A program made the translations under genes and the position numbers. From Zygophlyctis sp. KS116 (Eukaryota > Fungi > Chytridiomycota), in contig BAAFSQ010000172.1 of NCBI GenBank assembly GCA_054661495.1, forward strand, positions 1 through 21,499: a DNA stretch of 21,499 nt, given 5' to 3'. Below are positions 4,351-20,512 of the stretch, in pieces (the first letter of the stretch is position 1; each line of letters begins with the position of its first letter). The notes under the pieces are model-generated. The model had not been told where the DNA came from, did not search any database, and saw nothing but the letters and a program-made list of their open reading frames with translations.

Positions 4351-4453
4351 TACTCCTAGCATTGTGCAAATGCTGGAACTACTCCAAGCATTGTGCAAAT
4401 GCTGGAACTACTCCAAGCATTGTGCAAATGCTGGAACTACTCCAAGCATTGTG
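4351..4453. repeat. Tandem array, about 3.5 x 29 bp (tactccaagcattgtgcaaatgctggaac)
   Basis: Units start at 4351, 4380, 4409, with a partial unit at 4438. Each contains the agcatt...aatgct hairpin of the dispersed element family. Confidence 0.95.
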
Positions 4454-4482
4454 GGGGCACTAGGTGATATTAAAAATTTACA

Positions 4483-4908
4483 TTAGCTCTAATGGACCGA
4501 TCGCTGGGATTGAAGTGATTTAAAGTCTTGAGAGGTTCCTAATTTCAGGGCACCTTTTTTCCATTCATAAATAAAACCTAGTGTTAAAATAATCATAAAG
4601 AATAAGTAAGCTAATAAAGGAATAGGACTTTGCATAGTTTGTAAGATAGTAGCTAAGGGGAAAATGAATATAATTTCGAGGTCAAAAATGAGATATAAGA
4701 TACCAATAATCCAATAAAGAACATCAAACTTAATTCTAGCGTTAGTATGAATAGGGTCAAATCCGCACTCATAAGAAGACAGTTTTTCACTATCTTTCTG
4801 TGAGAGACTAGTTAAGAAATTCATAAGGTATAAAACACTTAAAATGATAGCGATAAGGAAAATAAGACATGCTAAACTGAGGCCAAAACTGTACTCCCAT
4901 AATTCCAT
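4483..4908 (-). CDS. nad3: NADH dehydrogenase subunit 3 (C-terminal part of the 419-aa fused frame)
   Basis: EKLSSYECGFDP, ILYLIFDLEIIFIFP, GFIYEWKKGAL. TAG 4489-4491 reads through to TAA 4483-4485. Start is uncertain (ATG 4908, or the fused start at 5742). Confidence 0.92.
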
Positions 4909-5742
4909 AGGAGAATGAAGGAAATAAAGGTTGTAAGTTTTTTTAATGTTATATCGATAGTTATAATAATCTAGGTCATGCATACAACGATAAGTTTCAA
5001 TCAGACTAGGGAAAATCTCTTTGTTAACAAGCATCCGTAATCTTTTAGCATAAAGTTCTTTAGGTAAATCATTAAATCCTAACTAATTATTGGGGTCTAA
5101 TTTAGTAATATCATACCGGAAAGTCATAGTAGGGAAATTAGAAGTGTTCTCATAAGCTAAACCATAACCAACCCAAACTCTAGAGCGTTTTAAGAGCTCT
5201 GAATCAAGGAAAGATTCATAGAATGGGAAAATAGTATTGAAAGAAGGCCATCCTCTAGAGACCATATATTTATCAATTAACTCAATAAGATGGGCAAAGA
5301 AGGAATCATAGTAAAATAGGAAAATGAGACCTAAAATAAGTAATCCACAAATCCGAACCTAAATGAGAGATTGATTAGTAAAATACTTGTAAAGGTAAGT
5401 GCAAAGGAAAAGAACTAGCATAATAATAAAGATAACAGTGTAATCGTTTTGTAACCGATAAGTACACATAATGCCATTGTAAATAAAATTATCGATACAC
5501 TGAAATTTCATCTCTGAAAAGAAGAATTTGTCCTCACTTAATTTAAAGAACATAGGTACAGACAAGTTTCGAACTCTCCAAAGAAATAAGTCTCTAGAGA
5601 GGTAAATACCATAAATAAGAACTGAAACAGAAACGATTAATAAAGTAATATGAATGAAACGAAAAAGAACCCCTAAAGGGGCCCCAATAGGAGGGAAAGA
5701 AAAATTTCTTATGGATTTGTCCATTGGAGAATAAAAAGTCAT
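4483..5742 (-). CDS. orf419: atp6 N-terminus + unknown membrane domain fused in frame to nad3
   Basis: Track ORFs 5359-5742, 5083-5265 and 4489-5034 share one frame. Each ends in TAG (Leu), and the linkers contain no TAA/TGA. Confidence 0.75.
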
Positions 5743-5804
5743 TTTAGAAGTATTTCACACATACACACTATACTTATCTTTCGAAAATTATCCTATCCTA
5801 AGAG
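5720..5804. repeat. 85-bp direct repeat, copy 1 (atp6 5' leader + first 7 codons)
   Basis: Identical to 14487-14571. Confidence 0.96.
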
Positions 5805-5812
5805 TCACTATT

Positions 5813-5911
5813 GGGCCCCCTTGGGGGGGGCGACAAGCCCCTAATTTAAAATTAGGGGTGCCCCCAGCCCCTAATTTCAAATTCTGGGGTCAAGCCGGGC
5901 CCCGATCCAGG
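5813..5911. repeat. GC-rich hairpin cluster
   Basis: gcccccttgggggggg followed by two agcccctaattt..aatt..gggg hairpins. Confidence 0.75.
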
Positions 5912-5913
5912 CT

Positions 5914-7383
<1,470 letters not shown>

Positions 7384-7653: not shown

Positions 7654-7957
7654 AATGGGACTCCTATCTTGAGAATATCCATATAGGATAGGGTCCCTCT
7701 GGACCCAGCATTGTAAGTGCTAGGGGTAAAGGGGGCCCTTTAGGCCGTTTTTCTTAAACTACATCCACAATATCTACTGGGGAGCCCCTTTAGGGGTGCC
7801 CCCATTTAATTAATAGAACGATAGGTTTTACCTATATCTTTGAACCATAATAGCTTTCTACTGGGGAGCCCCTTTTCCCCCAGCGACCCCCTATAGGGGG
7901 GTCCATTGGTCCAATCACTACAATTCGGTCCTACATCGATGGGTCCCAAAAAAAGGG

Positions 7958-8039
7958 TATGTCTGGTGGGAGTCGAACCCACAAGGCTTTCACCAGTTAC
8001 TTTAGAGATAACCGAGTTTTCCAATTTCTCCACAGACAC
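7958..8039 (-). tRNA. trnL: tRNA-Leu (anticodon CUA, decodes UAG)
   Basis: Cloverleaf: anticodon arm gttat-ctCTAaa-gtaac, long variable arm, T arm gtggg-ttcgact-cccac; 82 nt. Confidence 0.93.
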
Positions 8040-8085
8040 AACCAATAAACCTCAATAGTACCTCCAGCATAGGATGCAGGGCCTC

Positions 8086-8439: not shown

Positions 8440-8904
8440 TTACATATAATCCCAAAACTATTTTAATTCTTTTAAAGTTCTAATTAACTCTCTAGTAGTA
8501 TAACTATCTACATTATCATAAATATCCTGAAAATATTTGTCCTAGGCATAACTTTCAGGTGTTCTAGCTTCTACGTAATATCTTCTCCATTCATTCCAAA
8601 CAAAGCCTCTAGTCATATCTCTAAGTCTTTTAATACCTTGAATAGAATCAATGAGGTCTTTTATCTTATAAATTAAATCCGCTCGTCTATAAGGATTCTG
8701 AGGATCATTTTCATGTAAAGATGCAATATACTATCTACCATCTCTAATATAACACAACATATTATCTGGGTGATAAGGATCAGAAGTTGGAATATCTTCA
8801 CCAGTATGTGGACACCCTAAATCCTGGGCATGTAACTAATTTAAACAATCGTCCAGGGATCCACTAATAAAAGTACTAAGCCCCTAATATATAAGAAATA
8901 CCAT
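8440..8904 (-). CDS. orf154, hypothetical protein (visible only with UAG=Leu)
   Basis: ATG 8904 to TAA 8440, 5 internal TAG, no TAA/TGA. A/T-ending codon bias like the true genes; same strand as its neighbours. Confidence 0.65.
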
Positions 8905-9002: not shown

Positions 9003-11069
9003 TTATAATATAAGGATAATGATCATCTATAATAATATATAAGAAATATTCTAAAATAAGAATAAACCAAAGATAGTAAGTAAGACATAGTGAATAATAA
9101 ATCCAGTATATAAAATCTCAATATTGAAACTATTAAAATTTAATTTTCTAAAGATACCAAAGGGTCCAAAATATTGTAATAATCCTTTATCAAAATATCT
9201 GTAAAGACTAATAGAGTTATTTAATGAACTATGCATAATCCAGTAATTAAAGATATTAAAGTGAGAGAATGTTTTTGTTATCCAATATAAAGGCACTACA
9301 TTAGGACCCCCCGGTAGGGGGGTCGATACTGGTTTAAGATTGTCGGATCCAGCATGGGACTCCCTTTTAAATTGTGTAAGAAGTTTTCCTTGATATTTAA
9401 GTGGAACACCCAGATCTAAGCTTTTTAAAGTACCAATATTATATTTTTTTCTTAAAGGTAATAATGTGATTAATAAAACTAAAGGCTAAGATACAATTAA
9501 TTTTAATATTGTAAATTCAGATAAAGAACTATCAAATAGACGAATTCTACTAGGATGAGTAAAGATACTATTCATATAAATTTCAGTACCACCACCGATA
9601 AATAACTCTTGAGTCAGATATCCGAAGAATATAGATCCTAAGGCTAATAAGATGAAAGTAAATAAGATAGGGAAATCTAAAGGATCATGTATCATGTTGG
9701 TTAATCTATTATTAAAGTTTGGTTTACTCTAGAATGTGATAATTAATAGTCTGATAGAGTAAATACTAGTAAGGAAAGCAGCGACTAAAGTTAATAAATA
9801 AGCAATAGTTTGTGTGGTATTATTAGGAATAAATAGTATTTCCTAAATAAAATCTTTAGAGTAGAATCCAGTAAAGAAAGGAAATGCCATTAAAGAAAGA
9901 CTACCTATAATAAAGCAGGAATAAGTGATAGGTAAGAAGTGAACTAAATTTCCCATTTTTCTCATATCTTGTTCATCTAGTAAGGCATGTAAAACAGCTC
10001 CGGCGGACTAGAATAATAAGGCTTTAAAGAAAGCGTGATTAATTAAGTGAAATAAAGCTAAAGAGTATTGACTAATACCACAAGCAACAACCATATAACC
10101 TAATTGACTACTAGTAGAGAAAGCAATCTATTTTTTTAAGTCATTTTCTAACTAACCACAGGCTGCGGCCTATAATGCAGTAATACCTCCTAACCATGTG
10201 ATTACAACCTAATTAAGACTAGACCATTCCAACATTGGACTTATTTTCATAAATAAATATACTCCTGCAGTGACCATAGTAGCGGCATGAATTAAAGCTG
10301 AGACTGGAGTAGGAGCTTCCATAGATTCTGCTAACCAAGTATGTAATCCAAATTGGGCACTTTTGGCCATTGCTCCAATCATTAACAATATGATGGCTAA
10401 AAACTATAAATCACTATTAATTAGATGACTTAAAGGTAATAAAACTGCAAAAGACTAATCACTGGTAATAGCTAAGACCAGTATAATACCTAACATTAAT
10501 CCATAATCACCTAATCTATTTATCTAAAAGGCTTTCATTGAGGCTAAATTAGCGGACATTTTTGTAAACCAGAAATTTATTAACTAATAAGATGCAACTC
10601 CAACACCTTCCCATCCTAAGAACTATATTAACTAATTATCCCCAGTTATTAATAATATCATGGTAAAAGTAAAGAAAGAAAGATAAAAGAAAAATCTTAA
10701 AATATGAGGATCACCATTCGGGCACCCTGGACCCAGCATTGGAAATGCTGGGGATTCCGGGGGCCCCATATAACTATAACTATACTATTGAGCTAAGAAA
10801 GAAATTGTTATTACTGGTAAAAACATTGAAATTGTCAAAGTATCAAAGGTAAAAGACCAATCTAATTGAATCTATTCATATTTTATCCAATGACCCTAAT
10901 TGATGGTGACGGGTGATCCTGTCATAACTACCTCATAAAAAGAAATTAAAGTCAAGATCTAGGTAATAAACATACTTAGTATACTTAATATTGGTCCTAG
11001 TTTTATACCATTGAATCGGTTTGACTACTAACCACCCTATAAAGGTAGAAATATTAAACTTAGATACAT
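9003..11069 (-). CDS. nad5: NADH dehydrogenase subunit 5 (688 aa incl. in-frame GC insertions)
   Basis: [67 protein letters not shown]. Many TAG=Leu; TAA at 9003-9005. Confidence 0.95.
10719..10766. mobile_element. 48-bp GC-rich hairpin element inserted in frame in nad5
   Basis: gggcaccc-[ggacccagcattggaaatgctgggg]-gggggccc lies between the codons for YM and NGDPH. Confidence 0.85.
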
Positions 11070-11081
11070 ACTTACCTAATA

Positions 11082-12530
11082 TTATAATATATTATATAAA
11101 GAAACTTGAATACTATCTATTATCTAATGAGGATTGACTCCGAGATAAACTATAAAGAATAATAAAGGTACAAATAAATGAATCTCTTTACGAGTTACAT
11201 CATCAAACTATACAGGTAAATGATTACTAAATTGTCCATAAGCTATTTTATGGTAAGTCCATAAGAAGTAAATTGGCTACTAAAAACTTATCTAGGTTAT
11301 TATTACTGTAACAATAGGGTTTAATAAAGCACTACCATAATAGATTAAAAATTCACTGGCAAATCCAAAAGTACCTGGTAAACTTAAATTAGATAAACTA
11401 AATATTAAAAATAAGGTTATATATACTGGCATGATAAAGGTTAAACCTCTATAATATTTTAAAGTTCGAGTATGGTAACGATCATACTAGACTCCTACTA
11501 ACATAAACTATCCTCCAGAAACTAGACCATGAGAAATTGAATAACAATAACTACCTACTAGACCATGAATATTATTTGAAAAAATACCTATTATTGAAAT
11601 ATTCATATGAGCTATACTTGAATAGGCAATAACTTGTTTTAAATCTATTAATGATAAAGCTGAGATACAACTATAAATTATTCCTAATATAGCTAACTAA
11701 GTGACAAAGGGTAAGAAAAATTCACATGCTTCGGGAAACTAAGGTATTGAAAATCTTAAAAATCCATAAGTACCTAATTTTAATAATATAGCAGCCTAGA
11801 TCACTGAAGCACTGGTATTACCTTCGGTATGGGCTAAAGGTAACCAAATGTGAAATGGTACCATAGGGACTTTAATTGCAAATGATATAAAGAATCCCTA
11901 CCATAAAATATATTGAGTTGATCTATCTATTTCTATTGATAATAATAAAGGATATTCAGTAGTACCTCCCACAAAATATAAAAATACTATTGAAATAAAT
12001 AAGAATAAAGAACCCAATAATGTATATAAAAAGAATTGGTATAAAGCAGATAATTTTTTGTTTCTACTTCCAAAGTATCCTATTAAGAAAAACATAGGTA
12101 ATAAAACTGCTTCAAAACTTATAAAGAAATATATTAAATCTAAGACTAAAAAGACCATTAAAGACCAAAAGTTAATTAATAATATAGAATATAAAAATTT
12201 AACGGGCATAACTGAAACACTTTTATAACTTTGCTATAATATTATCGGTAATAACTAATTAGTCTACCAAATTAACCAGATTGAAATACCATCGATTCCT
12301 AATAAACTTCCATTAATGGTAGTAATAAATTGAAAACTGGGATTTAAAGGATCAAAGAGAAACTACTAAATAGTACTATGCACAAAATTTAATAAACTTA
12401 GATAAAAAGAAACTCTTATACTATTTTCTGTCTTATCATAGGCCGTGTATAATATTGATAAGATAGGCATTAACTATAATGGGCCCAGCATATTCTGTTG
12501 GACAAACTATGACTAATTATTTATAACCAT
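11082..12530 (-). CDS. nad4: NADH dehydrogenase subunit 4
   Basis: [49 protein letters not shown]. About 19 TAG=Leu; alternative start at 12491. Confidence 0.95.
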
Positions 12531-12602
12531 ATCTCTGTAATTGATATTATTAGTGTACTTATGGTCCTCCCGGGATCCATTGTAAATGTTGGGTACACAT
12601 AT

Positions 12603-13715
12603 TTAACCAATAATCATTAAAATTATAAAGTAACTAAAGTAAATGACTGTTGATAATTGACTTAAGAAGACATAAGGTTGATAAGCTGGTTTTCCACCTA
12701 ACCACATTAAGAAGAAGAAATTAAAGACAAAGATCCAGAATAAAAAGTTTAATATTGGTCTAAATCTATTGGCTCTAATATTCTAAGTATGAAACTAAGA
12801 TAAGGGGAATAAGATTAATAAAGCACCAAACATTCCTAATACTCCTCCTATTTTATTAGGGATAGCTCTTAATATTGCATAAAAAGGTAAGAAATACCAT
12901 TCGGGGACTATTGAGGCAGGTGTTACTAAAGGATTGGCTGGAATAGAATTATCTGGATGACCTAAATAATTGGGAGAATAAAAGATAAATAAACTTATTA
13001 AGATAAATAGCCATAAAAATCCGATTAAATCTTTGGAGGTGAAATAAGGGTGAAATCTTAATCTATCACTAGAAGATTGGATTCCTTCGGGATTATTACT
13101 TCCGGTTACATGTAAACTGATTAAATGCATTATGACTAAGGCTAATAATACAAATGGTAGTACAAAATGCTAACTAAAGAATCTATTTAAAGTTGGATTC
13201 TCGACGGAAAATCCTCCCCAGATGAATTCTACTAAACTGGTTCCGATCCAAGGAATTGCTGAAAACTAATTGGTAATGACTGTGGCTCCCCAAAGACTCA
13301 TTTGACCAAATGGTAATACATATCCTATAAAGGCTATGGCCATCATTAAAATATAAATGACCACTCCTATTGACCATAATAAAGTTCTAGGACTTCGGTA
13401 AGAACCATAATATAAACCTCTACCCATATGTAAATAGACAAAGATAAAGAAAAAAGAGGCTCCATTTGCATGTAAATATCTTAAAAACCAACCATTATTC
13501 ACATCTCTCATTATATGTTCCACACTATTGAAGGCTTCACTCACTGAAGGAGTATAATGCATGGCTAAACTTACACCACTTATGATTAAGATTATTAAAT
13601 TCTAACCTAATAAAGACCCAAAACTCCAAAAATGGGAGATATTTGAAGGTAAAGGAGAATCTATTAAATAAGTATTAGCCTAACTCTAGATTGGATTAGA
13701 TTTACTAATTTTCAT
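12603..13715 (-). CDS. cob: Apocytochrome b (no introns)
   Basis: [52 protein letters not shown]. One continuous frame with TAG=Leu. Confidence 0.98.
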
Positions 13716-13792
13716 AGACCTTCTATTTGGGGATTCTTAAATTTGAGGGTCCACCCCTAGGGGCTCCCCAGTTCTTAAAAAGTGCCCACGCA

Positions 13793-14509
13793 TTAGATCA
13801 TATCTCGGATAGTTATACAAGTGATAAAGGTAAAGATATAAGCTTGTAAATAAGCAATTAATAACTCCTAAGCTAAAAATAAAGAAACTAATAATAAAGG
13901 TAAACTTAATATTAATAAAGAAACATTATTTAAATAAGCTAAATAAATAAAACTTATTAACACTTTGGCTAAAATATGACCTGTGATTAAATTAACGGCT
14001 AATCGTAAACCTAAACTAAAAGTTCTTGTTAAATAAGCCTAGATCTCTAAAGGCACCATTAAAAAGATTAAAGCAAAAGGTGTTCCTGCTGGTAAAAAGG
14101 CGGCAAACTAATATAATTTGTGACTAAAGAATCCCATTATTAATACTCCCATTAAAATGGTAAAAGCTAAGGTTAAGGTCATTACTATCTCGACGGTTGG
14201 TGTTGAACTATAAGGGACCATTCCAATTAAGTTAGAAAATAATATTACTGTAAATAAGGTATAAATTAAAGGAAAGAACATCTCTAATTTAGGGCTAATA
14301 TAACTTTGAACCATTGAGAGTAAAGTTCGATAAAAGGACTCATTTAAAATTCCAAACCAACTACTTACTAATAAATTACTTTGTAAGGTTCCGATCATTA
14401 TTGAAATAAACATCACTAACTATAAACCATAATTGATATTGGTGAAATTCTATGTGAAAGATAATACACTATAAATTTCATATTGTTCCATTGGAGAATA
14501 AAAAGTCAT
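13793..14509 (-). CDS. atp6: ATP synthase F0 subunit a
   Basis: MTFYSPMEQYEI, SNLIGMVPYS, RTFSLGLRLAVNLITGH, LQAYIF; 238 aa. Confidence 0.96.
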
Positions 14510-14571
14510 TTTAGAAGTATTTCACACATACACACTATACTTATCTTTCGAAAATTATCCTATCCTAAGAG
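14487..14571. repeat. 85-bp direct repeat, copy 2 (native atp6 5' region)
   Basis: Identical to 5720-5804. Confidence 0.96.
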
Positions 14572-14676
14572 ACTCTATTTAGCCCAGAATTTTTAATTAT
14601 GAGGTCTCCAGACTGGGTAGAAATGCAGAGATAACTACATAGGGGGCTGGCCCATTAACTAATCTTAGGAATGGTC

Positions 14677-19257: not shown

Positions 19258-20512
19258 TAGTTTCGTGTATGATTATGGCTCAATTGAACGCGTATTCATA
19301 GACCTGACACATGCGAATTGAAAAGTTGAGGGTTTCGGCCTTAGACTTAGTAAATAGAAAGGTGAGTAAAGGATTTATTTACCCAACGGACCCCCCTAGA
19401 GGGGGTCGGTAGATAGTAATATCTTAAGTTGGATAATTTATCCAGAGTTTTAGGTAGTAGAGAGATGAAGATCTCATCTAGCCGATGATGCTTAACGTAA
19501 GTCACAGATGGTATGAAAAATCATCCCTTTGGCAGCAGTGAGGAATCTTGGGCAATGGTTGAAAGACTGACCCAGTTTATGAATTAGGCAATACGACGCT
19601 TTGGATGTACTTCTGGAGAAGAGTATGCCATTAGAGATTATTGTAGAATGAACGATATCTCGGATTTTCGTCCCGGCCAAATCTGTGCCAGCCGCCGCGG
19701 TAAGACAGAAGATGGGTTTAAACACATTGATGGACGGCGTTTTTTATCATGAATGGGCAGAAAGCGTGGTCAGACTTAATTGATTGAGTTACCGATTCTT
19801 GCCGGCTCCCCTAAAGGGGCCCCAATTGGAGAGATGGTTCTTGATTATCTCGAACTCACAATTTAGAGTTACTTTTGAGGTTATGTAGAATGATTCATTT
19901 AGGCGTGATATCCTGAGAGATGTTTTGGAAGAATAACTGTGAAGACTGATAACTGAAAGTAACTGTCGTTTACCCACTAAAGTATGGAGAACGATAGGGA
20001 TTAGATACCCCTGTAGCCCATACCCTAGATCGAGCTTGAAAAGAGATAGCTCCGCCTTCGAAGTACGATTGCAAAATTGAAATGGAAATAAGTTGACGGG
20101 TCCCGATAAGAGCAGTGGAACACGTGATTTAATTGGATGATACCCCATATATCTTACCTTTATACTTAGGTGTTGCATGGCTGTTGCAAGTGAGTCCAGC
20201 AATGGGGATAAACTTACTAATAAGTTCTTTAGAGAGCTATCAATACAAGTAATCACGGCCCAATGTTAAAGGCATACACGTGTTACAATGGTTAATCACA
20301 AATAAACAAACTTAACCGTAGTTCGGATAATTCTCTGGAATCGAGAATTTGAAGCTGGAATTGCTAGTAATCGTCATTTATTATCTGACGGTGAATGTTT
20401 ACCTCGGGATTGTACAAACCGCCTGTCAATACAAGAGAAAGGTCCTAGCGGGTCTTGATCAGGTATAAGTCATAACAAGGTCATGGTACCGGAAGGTGCT
20501 GTGTAAGTCAAT
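19258..20512 (+). rRNA. rns: Mitochondrial small subunit rRNA (ends approximate)
   Basis: tgattatggctcaattgaacgc, ggcagcagtgaggaat, gtgccagccgccgcggtaa, ggattagataccc, tgttgcatggctgt, tgtacaaaccgcc, aagtcataacaagg. Confidence 0.95.

Follow-up and report, generated by a model that had tools for sequence, protein, structure and literature searches.

From bacteria to humans, the membrane-bound core subunits of complex I hardly vary in size, and the accessory subunits are nucleus-encoded. Solved mitochondrially encoded chains of the core subunit Nad3 (Nad3/NuoA, PF00507) have 111-146 residues. A long N-terminal stretch ahead of the Nad3 core is found in Chlamydomonas ND3 (9f5x_S, 279 residues), which we take to be a nucleus-encoded precursor with an import presequence. 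The chimeric ORFs of plant CMS loci (orf79 and T-urf13 type) are young, extra and strain-specific mosaics, in which the 5′ flank and first codons are borrowed from an atp gene. Fused cox1-cox2 genes, in which one frame possibly yields two proteins, are known from amoebozoan mitochondria (PMC7194472). MCOX2e of unionoid mussels (PMC2430956) is an old, lineage-specific, multi-helix membrane extension of cox2 with a hydrophilic part; it has no homologue elsewhere and evolves under purifying selection, faster than the core to which it is joined.

Here, we describe a mitochondrial nad3 of a chytrid fungus whose C-terminal 120 residues share the three membrane helices and the YECGF loop with Nad3/NuoA, but in which this core is preceded by a predicted folded domain of 255-280 residues. 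Its closest counterpart in working is MCOX2e, since both are old multi-helix additions under purifying selection, and no homology is claimed; MCOX2e belongs to complex IV, is C-terminal, has ~185 residues and is tied to male-transmitted mtDNA, whereas the nad3 extension belongs to complex I, is N-terminal and occurs in a fungus. Similarly to the amoebozoan gene, the long nad3 is one frame with possibly two proteins; however, both halves of cox1-cox2 are known respiratory subunits, whereas here all 14 standard genes exist apart from the extension. As in plant CMS ORFs, an atp 5′ flank and first codons have been copied onto a membrane ORF, but the present frame is the sole nad3 rather than an extra gene, and its domain is conserved across a deep clade. 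The match to Chlamydomonas ND3 covered the core only.

The window, i.e., the whole stretch of 21,499 nts analyzed (contig BAAFSQ010000172.1 of Zygophlyctis sp. KS116), holds most of a chytrid-type mitochondrial genome, with cox1-3, cob, nad1-6, nad4L, atp6, atp8, atp9, both rRNAs and four tRNAs, and near-identical DNA was present in lake, estuary and wastewater samples. The core genes are uninterrupted only when TAG is read as a sense codon. Because 74 in-frame TAGs occur across seven core genes, the residue most commonly opposite to them in homologues is Leu (268/486) and a tRNA with a CTA anticodon is encoded, TAG was assigned to Leu (table 16). The features that concern the long frame under this code are as follows.

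4483-5742, minus strand: nad3 with N-terminal extension, 419 codons plus TAA under table 16; homologues in one frame
5668-5685, minus strand: in-frame insertion of a GC-rich palindrome, 18 nts = 6 codons, missing in other strains; a similar element lies at 19808-19834
7955-8040, minus strand: tRNA-Leu reading TAG, anticodon CTA, long variable arm; required for reading the nad3 frame through

The frame runs from 5742 to 4483 on the minus strand (1260 nts), with TAG at codons 128 (5361), 220 (5085) and 418 (4491). The initial annotation, made from the sequence alone, had joined three ORFs into this uninterrupted frame of 419 codons, which was confirmed, together with both of the linkers it quoted. 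Because TAG is read as stop in standard annotation, the long gene is hidden from it, and databases list its pieces as short hypothetical proteins. Two independent runs gave contigs over 4479-5755 and 4712-5755, with substitutions but neither a frameshift nor a stop; in both runs the 18-nt palindrome was lacking. Contigs of an RNA library spanned 4424-5274, 5293-5706 and 5292-5749, and the first of these bridges the extension and the Nad3 core, indicating presence in the library and not a transcript end or level. In genome G000, the extended gene is single copy and the sole nad3, and no nuclear copy or NUMT of it was found there. The only nad3 of this organism, 3-4 times the normal length, encodes Nad3 together with an old, clade-specific N-terminal domain of ~255 residues. 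No earlier report of an extended chytrid Nad3 was found in the literature searched, which was mostly non-subscription; a study of chytrid mitogenomes lists nad3 without comment (PMC6131824), and an unremarked long annotation may exist among GenBank organelle records.

Inspection of hydropathy, conservation and a structural model divides the protein into the following parts.

5593-5670, minus strand: membrane helix 1 of the extension, residues ~25-50, continuing as a long helix in which R56 and P63 are conserved (hydropathy, model, conservation)
5377-5451, minus strand: membrane helix 2 of the extension, residues ~98-122 (hydropathy, model)
5293-5370, minus strand: membrane helix 3 of the extension, residues ~125-150, with conserved D146 at its end (hydropathy, model, conservation)
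4948-5292, minus strand: soluble helical part of the extension, residues ~151-265, with conserved G192, G194, D216, P217, P245 and L247 (model, conservation)
4897-4947, minus strand: linker, variable in length and modelled with low confidence, containing M279, which is not conserved
4537-4896, minus strand: Nad3 core, residues ~283-402 (PF00507, E 7e-27)

Three hydrophobic stretches followed by a soluble part had been noticed in the initial annotation, and the present helices agree with them. In the core, the Pfam family PF00507 matched residues 303-400 with 93.9 bits against a curated cut-off of 23.3, and similarity to solved Nad3/NuoA began near residue 290 (E 3e-22 to Paracoccus NuoA, 8qby_A; also to plant and fungal Nad3). 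The core contains three membrane helices, the conserved YECGF loop and the DLE and YEWKKGAL motifs. The assignment of Nad3 to residues 279-419 was therefore correct as to its C-terminal location but too wide, because residues 403-419 form a non-conserved tail and the Met at 279 is not conserved. The structure of the extension was predicted with AlphaFold using P0157, a database protein in which the three TAG positions are given as Gln. The model was all helical (pLDDT 90, pTM 0.84), with three long helices bearing the membrane segments and then a compact helical part, and its confidence fell in the linker (pLDDT 53-66).

Homologues collected via the Nad3 part and translated with table 16 each formed a single frame of 388-527 codons, with Nad3 as its last part. 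The long frame was found in L003/4, L005, L009, L011, L013, L015, L020, L021 and L025 and in the proteins P0121, P0122, P0129, P0130 and P0157; the first four of these proteins are full-length long forms, some of them without any TAG. Wherever flanks were visible, the order was cox1, then nad3, then cox2. P0021 and the cox1/nad3 chimera L036 were regarded as artefacts. Across the extension, 16 distinct environmental sequences could be aligned, with pairwise identity from 80% down to 12%; R56 was invariant and D146, G192, G194, D216 and P245 were nearly so. Conservation falls on R, D, G, P, F and L, and on no His or Cys. One subclade has an additional hydrophobic stretch of ~100 residues ahead of the extension.

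A run of about 278 codons free of TAA and TGA had been taken as a sign of selection, and its probability by chance at the composition of the window is ~3e-6. Substitution rates with the homologues agreed with that suggestion. Between the window and L003, dN/dS of the extension was 0.21 (bootstrap 0.14-0.32), similar to that of nad6 (0.24) and above that of the core (0.07), indicating purifying selection. Codon-model omega was 0.12-0.13 in the subclade of the window, 0.21 in L013/L021/L025 and 0.27 over all sequences (lnL -7846 vs -7951 with omega = 1), and each of these estimates gave a far better fit than omega = 1. In L011/L018/L019/L023, omega was 0.78 and did not differ from 1, indicating either relaxed or positive selection; pairwise dN/dS there reached 2 (L018 vs L023). 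Judged from these alignments, the extension is an old conserved domain under purifying selection and not a recent mosaic.

The frame begins with MTFYSPM, identical to Atp6 as the initial annotation had stated, and this identity belongs to a repeat of 99 nts.

5720-5818, minus strand: copy at the nad3 5′ end, ~76 nts from the 5′ flank and the opening 23 nts of the coding sequence (MTFYSPM); 85 nts exact (5720-5804)
14487-14585, minus strand: second copy, at the atp6 5′ end

In the closest other species (L003/L004, extension 78% identical), the diverged non-coding flank was still recognisable, but nad3 starts with MKT, and the nad3 starts of the more distant homologues all differ from MTFYSPM. 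Near-identical strains have MTFYTPL but share 100% identity with the window in Atp6. On the simplest reading, the seven residues would have come along when one of the two 5′ ends (nad3 and atp6), which may share an expression signal, was recently copied to the other and the copied piece ran a few codons into the gene. By these comparisons the Atp6-like leader is incidental and not a conserved part of the protein, and the proposal that it forms a meaningful part of a fusion was not supported, 23 coding nts being involved in a mostly non-coding repeat. The likeness to plant CMS chimeras drawn at the same time was not supported either, since the extension is old and conserved and the gene is the sole nad3. 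No conserved RNA structure was found in the shared 5′ flank or in the region before M279. In L097 (1-1082 and 8942-10023), the 3′ half of cox1 occurs twice and is followed once by atp6 and once by nad3 via the shared repeat, which is either a misassembly or a recombined sub-genome.

Relatives of the extension were sought with TAG-free pieces of the frame, searched separately, and with the database proteins. Outside the clade, no relative was found by sequence or family in Pfam, PHROGs, PDB by profile, word-index searches, plasmids or ESM Atlas features, and an HMM scan of 1.84 billion representatives gave 15 matches, all of the long-nad3 family. Foldseek gave no match at E<0.001 among PDB and viral structures. 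The best hits of the VIA structure search (Z 9.0 over ~90 residues) were generic three-helix bundles, and the best TM of the Atlas structure search was 0.38. All of these structural negatives are weak, because the full-length model missed even ND3. Tandem duplication of Nad3 was rejected by hhalign of the extension against the core (probability 0.4%, E 0.16). Fusion with Atp8, which would call for an MPQ start, a single helix and no second copy, was also rejected: a separate atp8 lies at 14841-14677. An origin from a homing endonuclease or intron maturase was discarded as well: LAGLIDADG, GIY-YIG and RT/maturase families of Pfam gave no match, the predicted fold is an all-helical membrane fold, and no joints were seen in the RNA contigs.

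Short nad3 genes occur within or beside this clade of freshwater chytrids, in L024/P0015 and L017/P0009. In the tree of Nad3 cores, the extended forms made up one group with the two short lineages inside, and chytrid-like sequences outside it were short; monophyly of the extended forms was compatible with the 124-column core (p-AU 0.14). P0021 had been labelled extended without evidence in the first tree and was excluded from the AU test. The tree is most simply explained by a single gain and two losses, and these losses are likely. In L024, nad3 is relocated between nad4L and cox3, and the extension was not found in the 6.2 kb available; in L017 and L095, nad3 begins right after a stop and keeps a segment that looks like the last part of the linker. 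A separate gene for the extension was found neither in the 6.2 kb of L024 nor in the 14.9 kb of L026, and the contigs of L017/L095 are too short to show one. Since nad3 is short in the two lineages, some members of the clade can probably do without the domain.

Both ends of the contig (window 1-77 and 21423-21499) enter the same 2.5-kb contig (G000:C727, L112) in inverted orientation, which points to terminal inverted repeats on a linear mtDNA or else to a large inverted repeat. The 2.5-kb contig holds tRNA-Met, tRNA-Tyr and an apparent broken remnant of a single-subunit RNA polymerase, of which we take the sequence VTVHDCF to be a signature. Since this inverted-repeat end bears an apparently decayed RNA polymerase of the plasmid type, a linear plasmid is a possible donor of the domain.

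The proposal of a greatly extended complex I subunit or a polyprotein agrees with the conserved frame, the selection and the lack of a conserved internal Met. A Met near the Nad3 core is missing in six homologues (L005, L011, L015, L018, L020 and P0012), and over very deep divergence a stop has nowhere become fixed between extension and core; for these reasons Nad3 is, by sequence, most likely translated as one long chain. With a probability of about 50%, we consider the extension to be an accessory module, built into complex I on its intermembrane-space side, that would still be attached to Nad3, a reading drawn from the alignments and the predicted fold. Translation would start at the upstream ATG (5742). 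The N-terminus of Nad3 lies in the intermembrane space, and from this known topology of Nad3/NuoA the three added helices would bring the new N-terminus into the matrix. The loop that follows the first of them would presumably face the intermembrane space, and so would the soluble part, which precedes Nad3 helix 1; both would lie below the Nad1/Nad3 region, where accessory subunits sit. The extension would then dock near Nad1/Nad3 as a supernumerary module and serve in structure, assembly or supercomplexes rather than in catalysis. A structural, attached module is favored because there are no cofactor ligands and the linker has no conserved cleavage motif among the homologues. The nuclear genes NDUFA13, NUXM and NDUFA1 are present, so that the domain is no replacement for those three. 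Against this reading, the variable linker with its pLDDT of 53-66 is equally compatible with a cleavage linker, complex I manages without the domain in L024/P0015 and L017/P0009, and omega is 0.78 in the L011/L018/L019/L023 subclade.

Cleavage of a long precursor in the linker on the intermembrane-space side, e.g., by Imp1/Imp2, is less likely but the main alternative; it would release normal Nad3 and either a three-helix protein with its own job or a discarded pro-domain for insertion or assembly. The extension is predicted to fold by itself, the frame has neither an internal stop nor a conserved internal start, the clade keeps a second conserved mitochondrial ORF as an extra protein (below), the fused amoebozoan gene offers a precedent, and two S26 peptidase genes are present in the nuclear genome; however, these peptidases are general in fungi, no cleavage motif is conserved, and in none of the loci covered was the extension a free-standing gene. 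SPME, which resembles the Atp6 maturation site, was rejected as a conserved site of the Atp23 type, because it stands before the Nad3 core only in close kin of the window. That an internal start at M279 or a non-ATG codon produces ordinary Nad3, the long form being minor or having a separate role, seems improbable: M279 is at the normal Nad3 start position in the window, L003 and P0003, and the short-nad3 relatives begin with Met in the same area, but the six homologues without Met there and the lack of a fixed stop speak against it. We consider it very improbable that a mobile or plasmid-derived ORF was captured in frame and is tolerated, nearly neutral and without real function. The polymerase remnant at the genome end, the probable losses and an omega near 1 in one subclade would fit such a capture, whereas omega of 0.12-0.27 in three of four subclade sets, a frame kept at 12% identity, the invariant R56 with near-invariant D146, G192, D216 and P245, the confident predicted fold and the absence of any match of the extension to a homing endonuclease, maturase, plasmid or viral protein oppose it; the selection tests already largely refute this reading. 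A recent CMS-like chimera with a functional Atp6 leader, e.g., a pro-peptide cleaved by Atp23, is hardly credible. Its first seven residues are those of Atp6 and Atp23-family genes exist in the nucleus, but the leader is missing in all other species and altered in near-identical strains with unchanged Atp6, and the body of the ORF is no mosaic of other mitochondrial genes (self-BLAST, hhalign). The comparisons of the leader across species and strains refute this reading as a general trait.

The conserved domain on a core subunit of complex I is real. A predicted folded domain of ~30 kDa kept by selection on Nad3 would be an accessory module encoded in mtDNA, or else part of a natural polyprotein with a fifteenth protein, and the long Nad3 offers a direct test of the origin of accessory subunits and of the export of large domains by mitochondria. 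We tentatively suggest, at somewhat less than even odds, that the lake-chytrid clade gained a wholly new membrane domain encoded in mtDNA, with a previously unseen fold, that is fused to Nad3 and kept in the mature enzyme. If this is true, then together with the second ORF it would show a small fungal mtDNA gaining respiratory-chain protein rather than losing it.

The second conserved ORF (window 8440-8904, minus strand, 154 codons under table 16) has a soluble part in addition to a single hydrophobic stretch at its N-terminus. It had no match in Pfam or the ESM Atlas and no similarity to the nad3 extension. It is conserved in L003, L009, L013, L097 and L098 and tandemly doubled in L011 and L020, i.e., in the same clade as the extension. 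Elsewhere in the window, rns and atp9 lie on the strand opposite to the other genes, and cob, nad4 and nad5 (9003-13736, minus strand) share one reading frame with single stop codons and short leaders between them. cox1 (5914-7383, minus strand) has no intron and ~489 codons from its likely start, with a C-terminus shorter than usual. GC-rich palindromic elements are dispersed in the genome (5668-5685, 4351-4453, 7593-7652 and others); they vary between strains, and some lie in frame within coding DNA.
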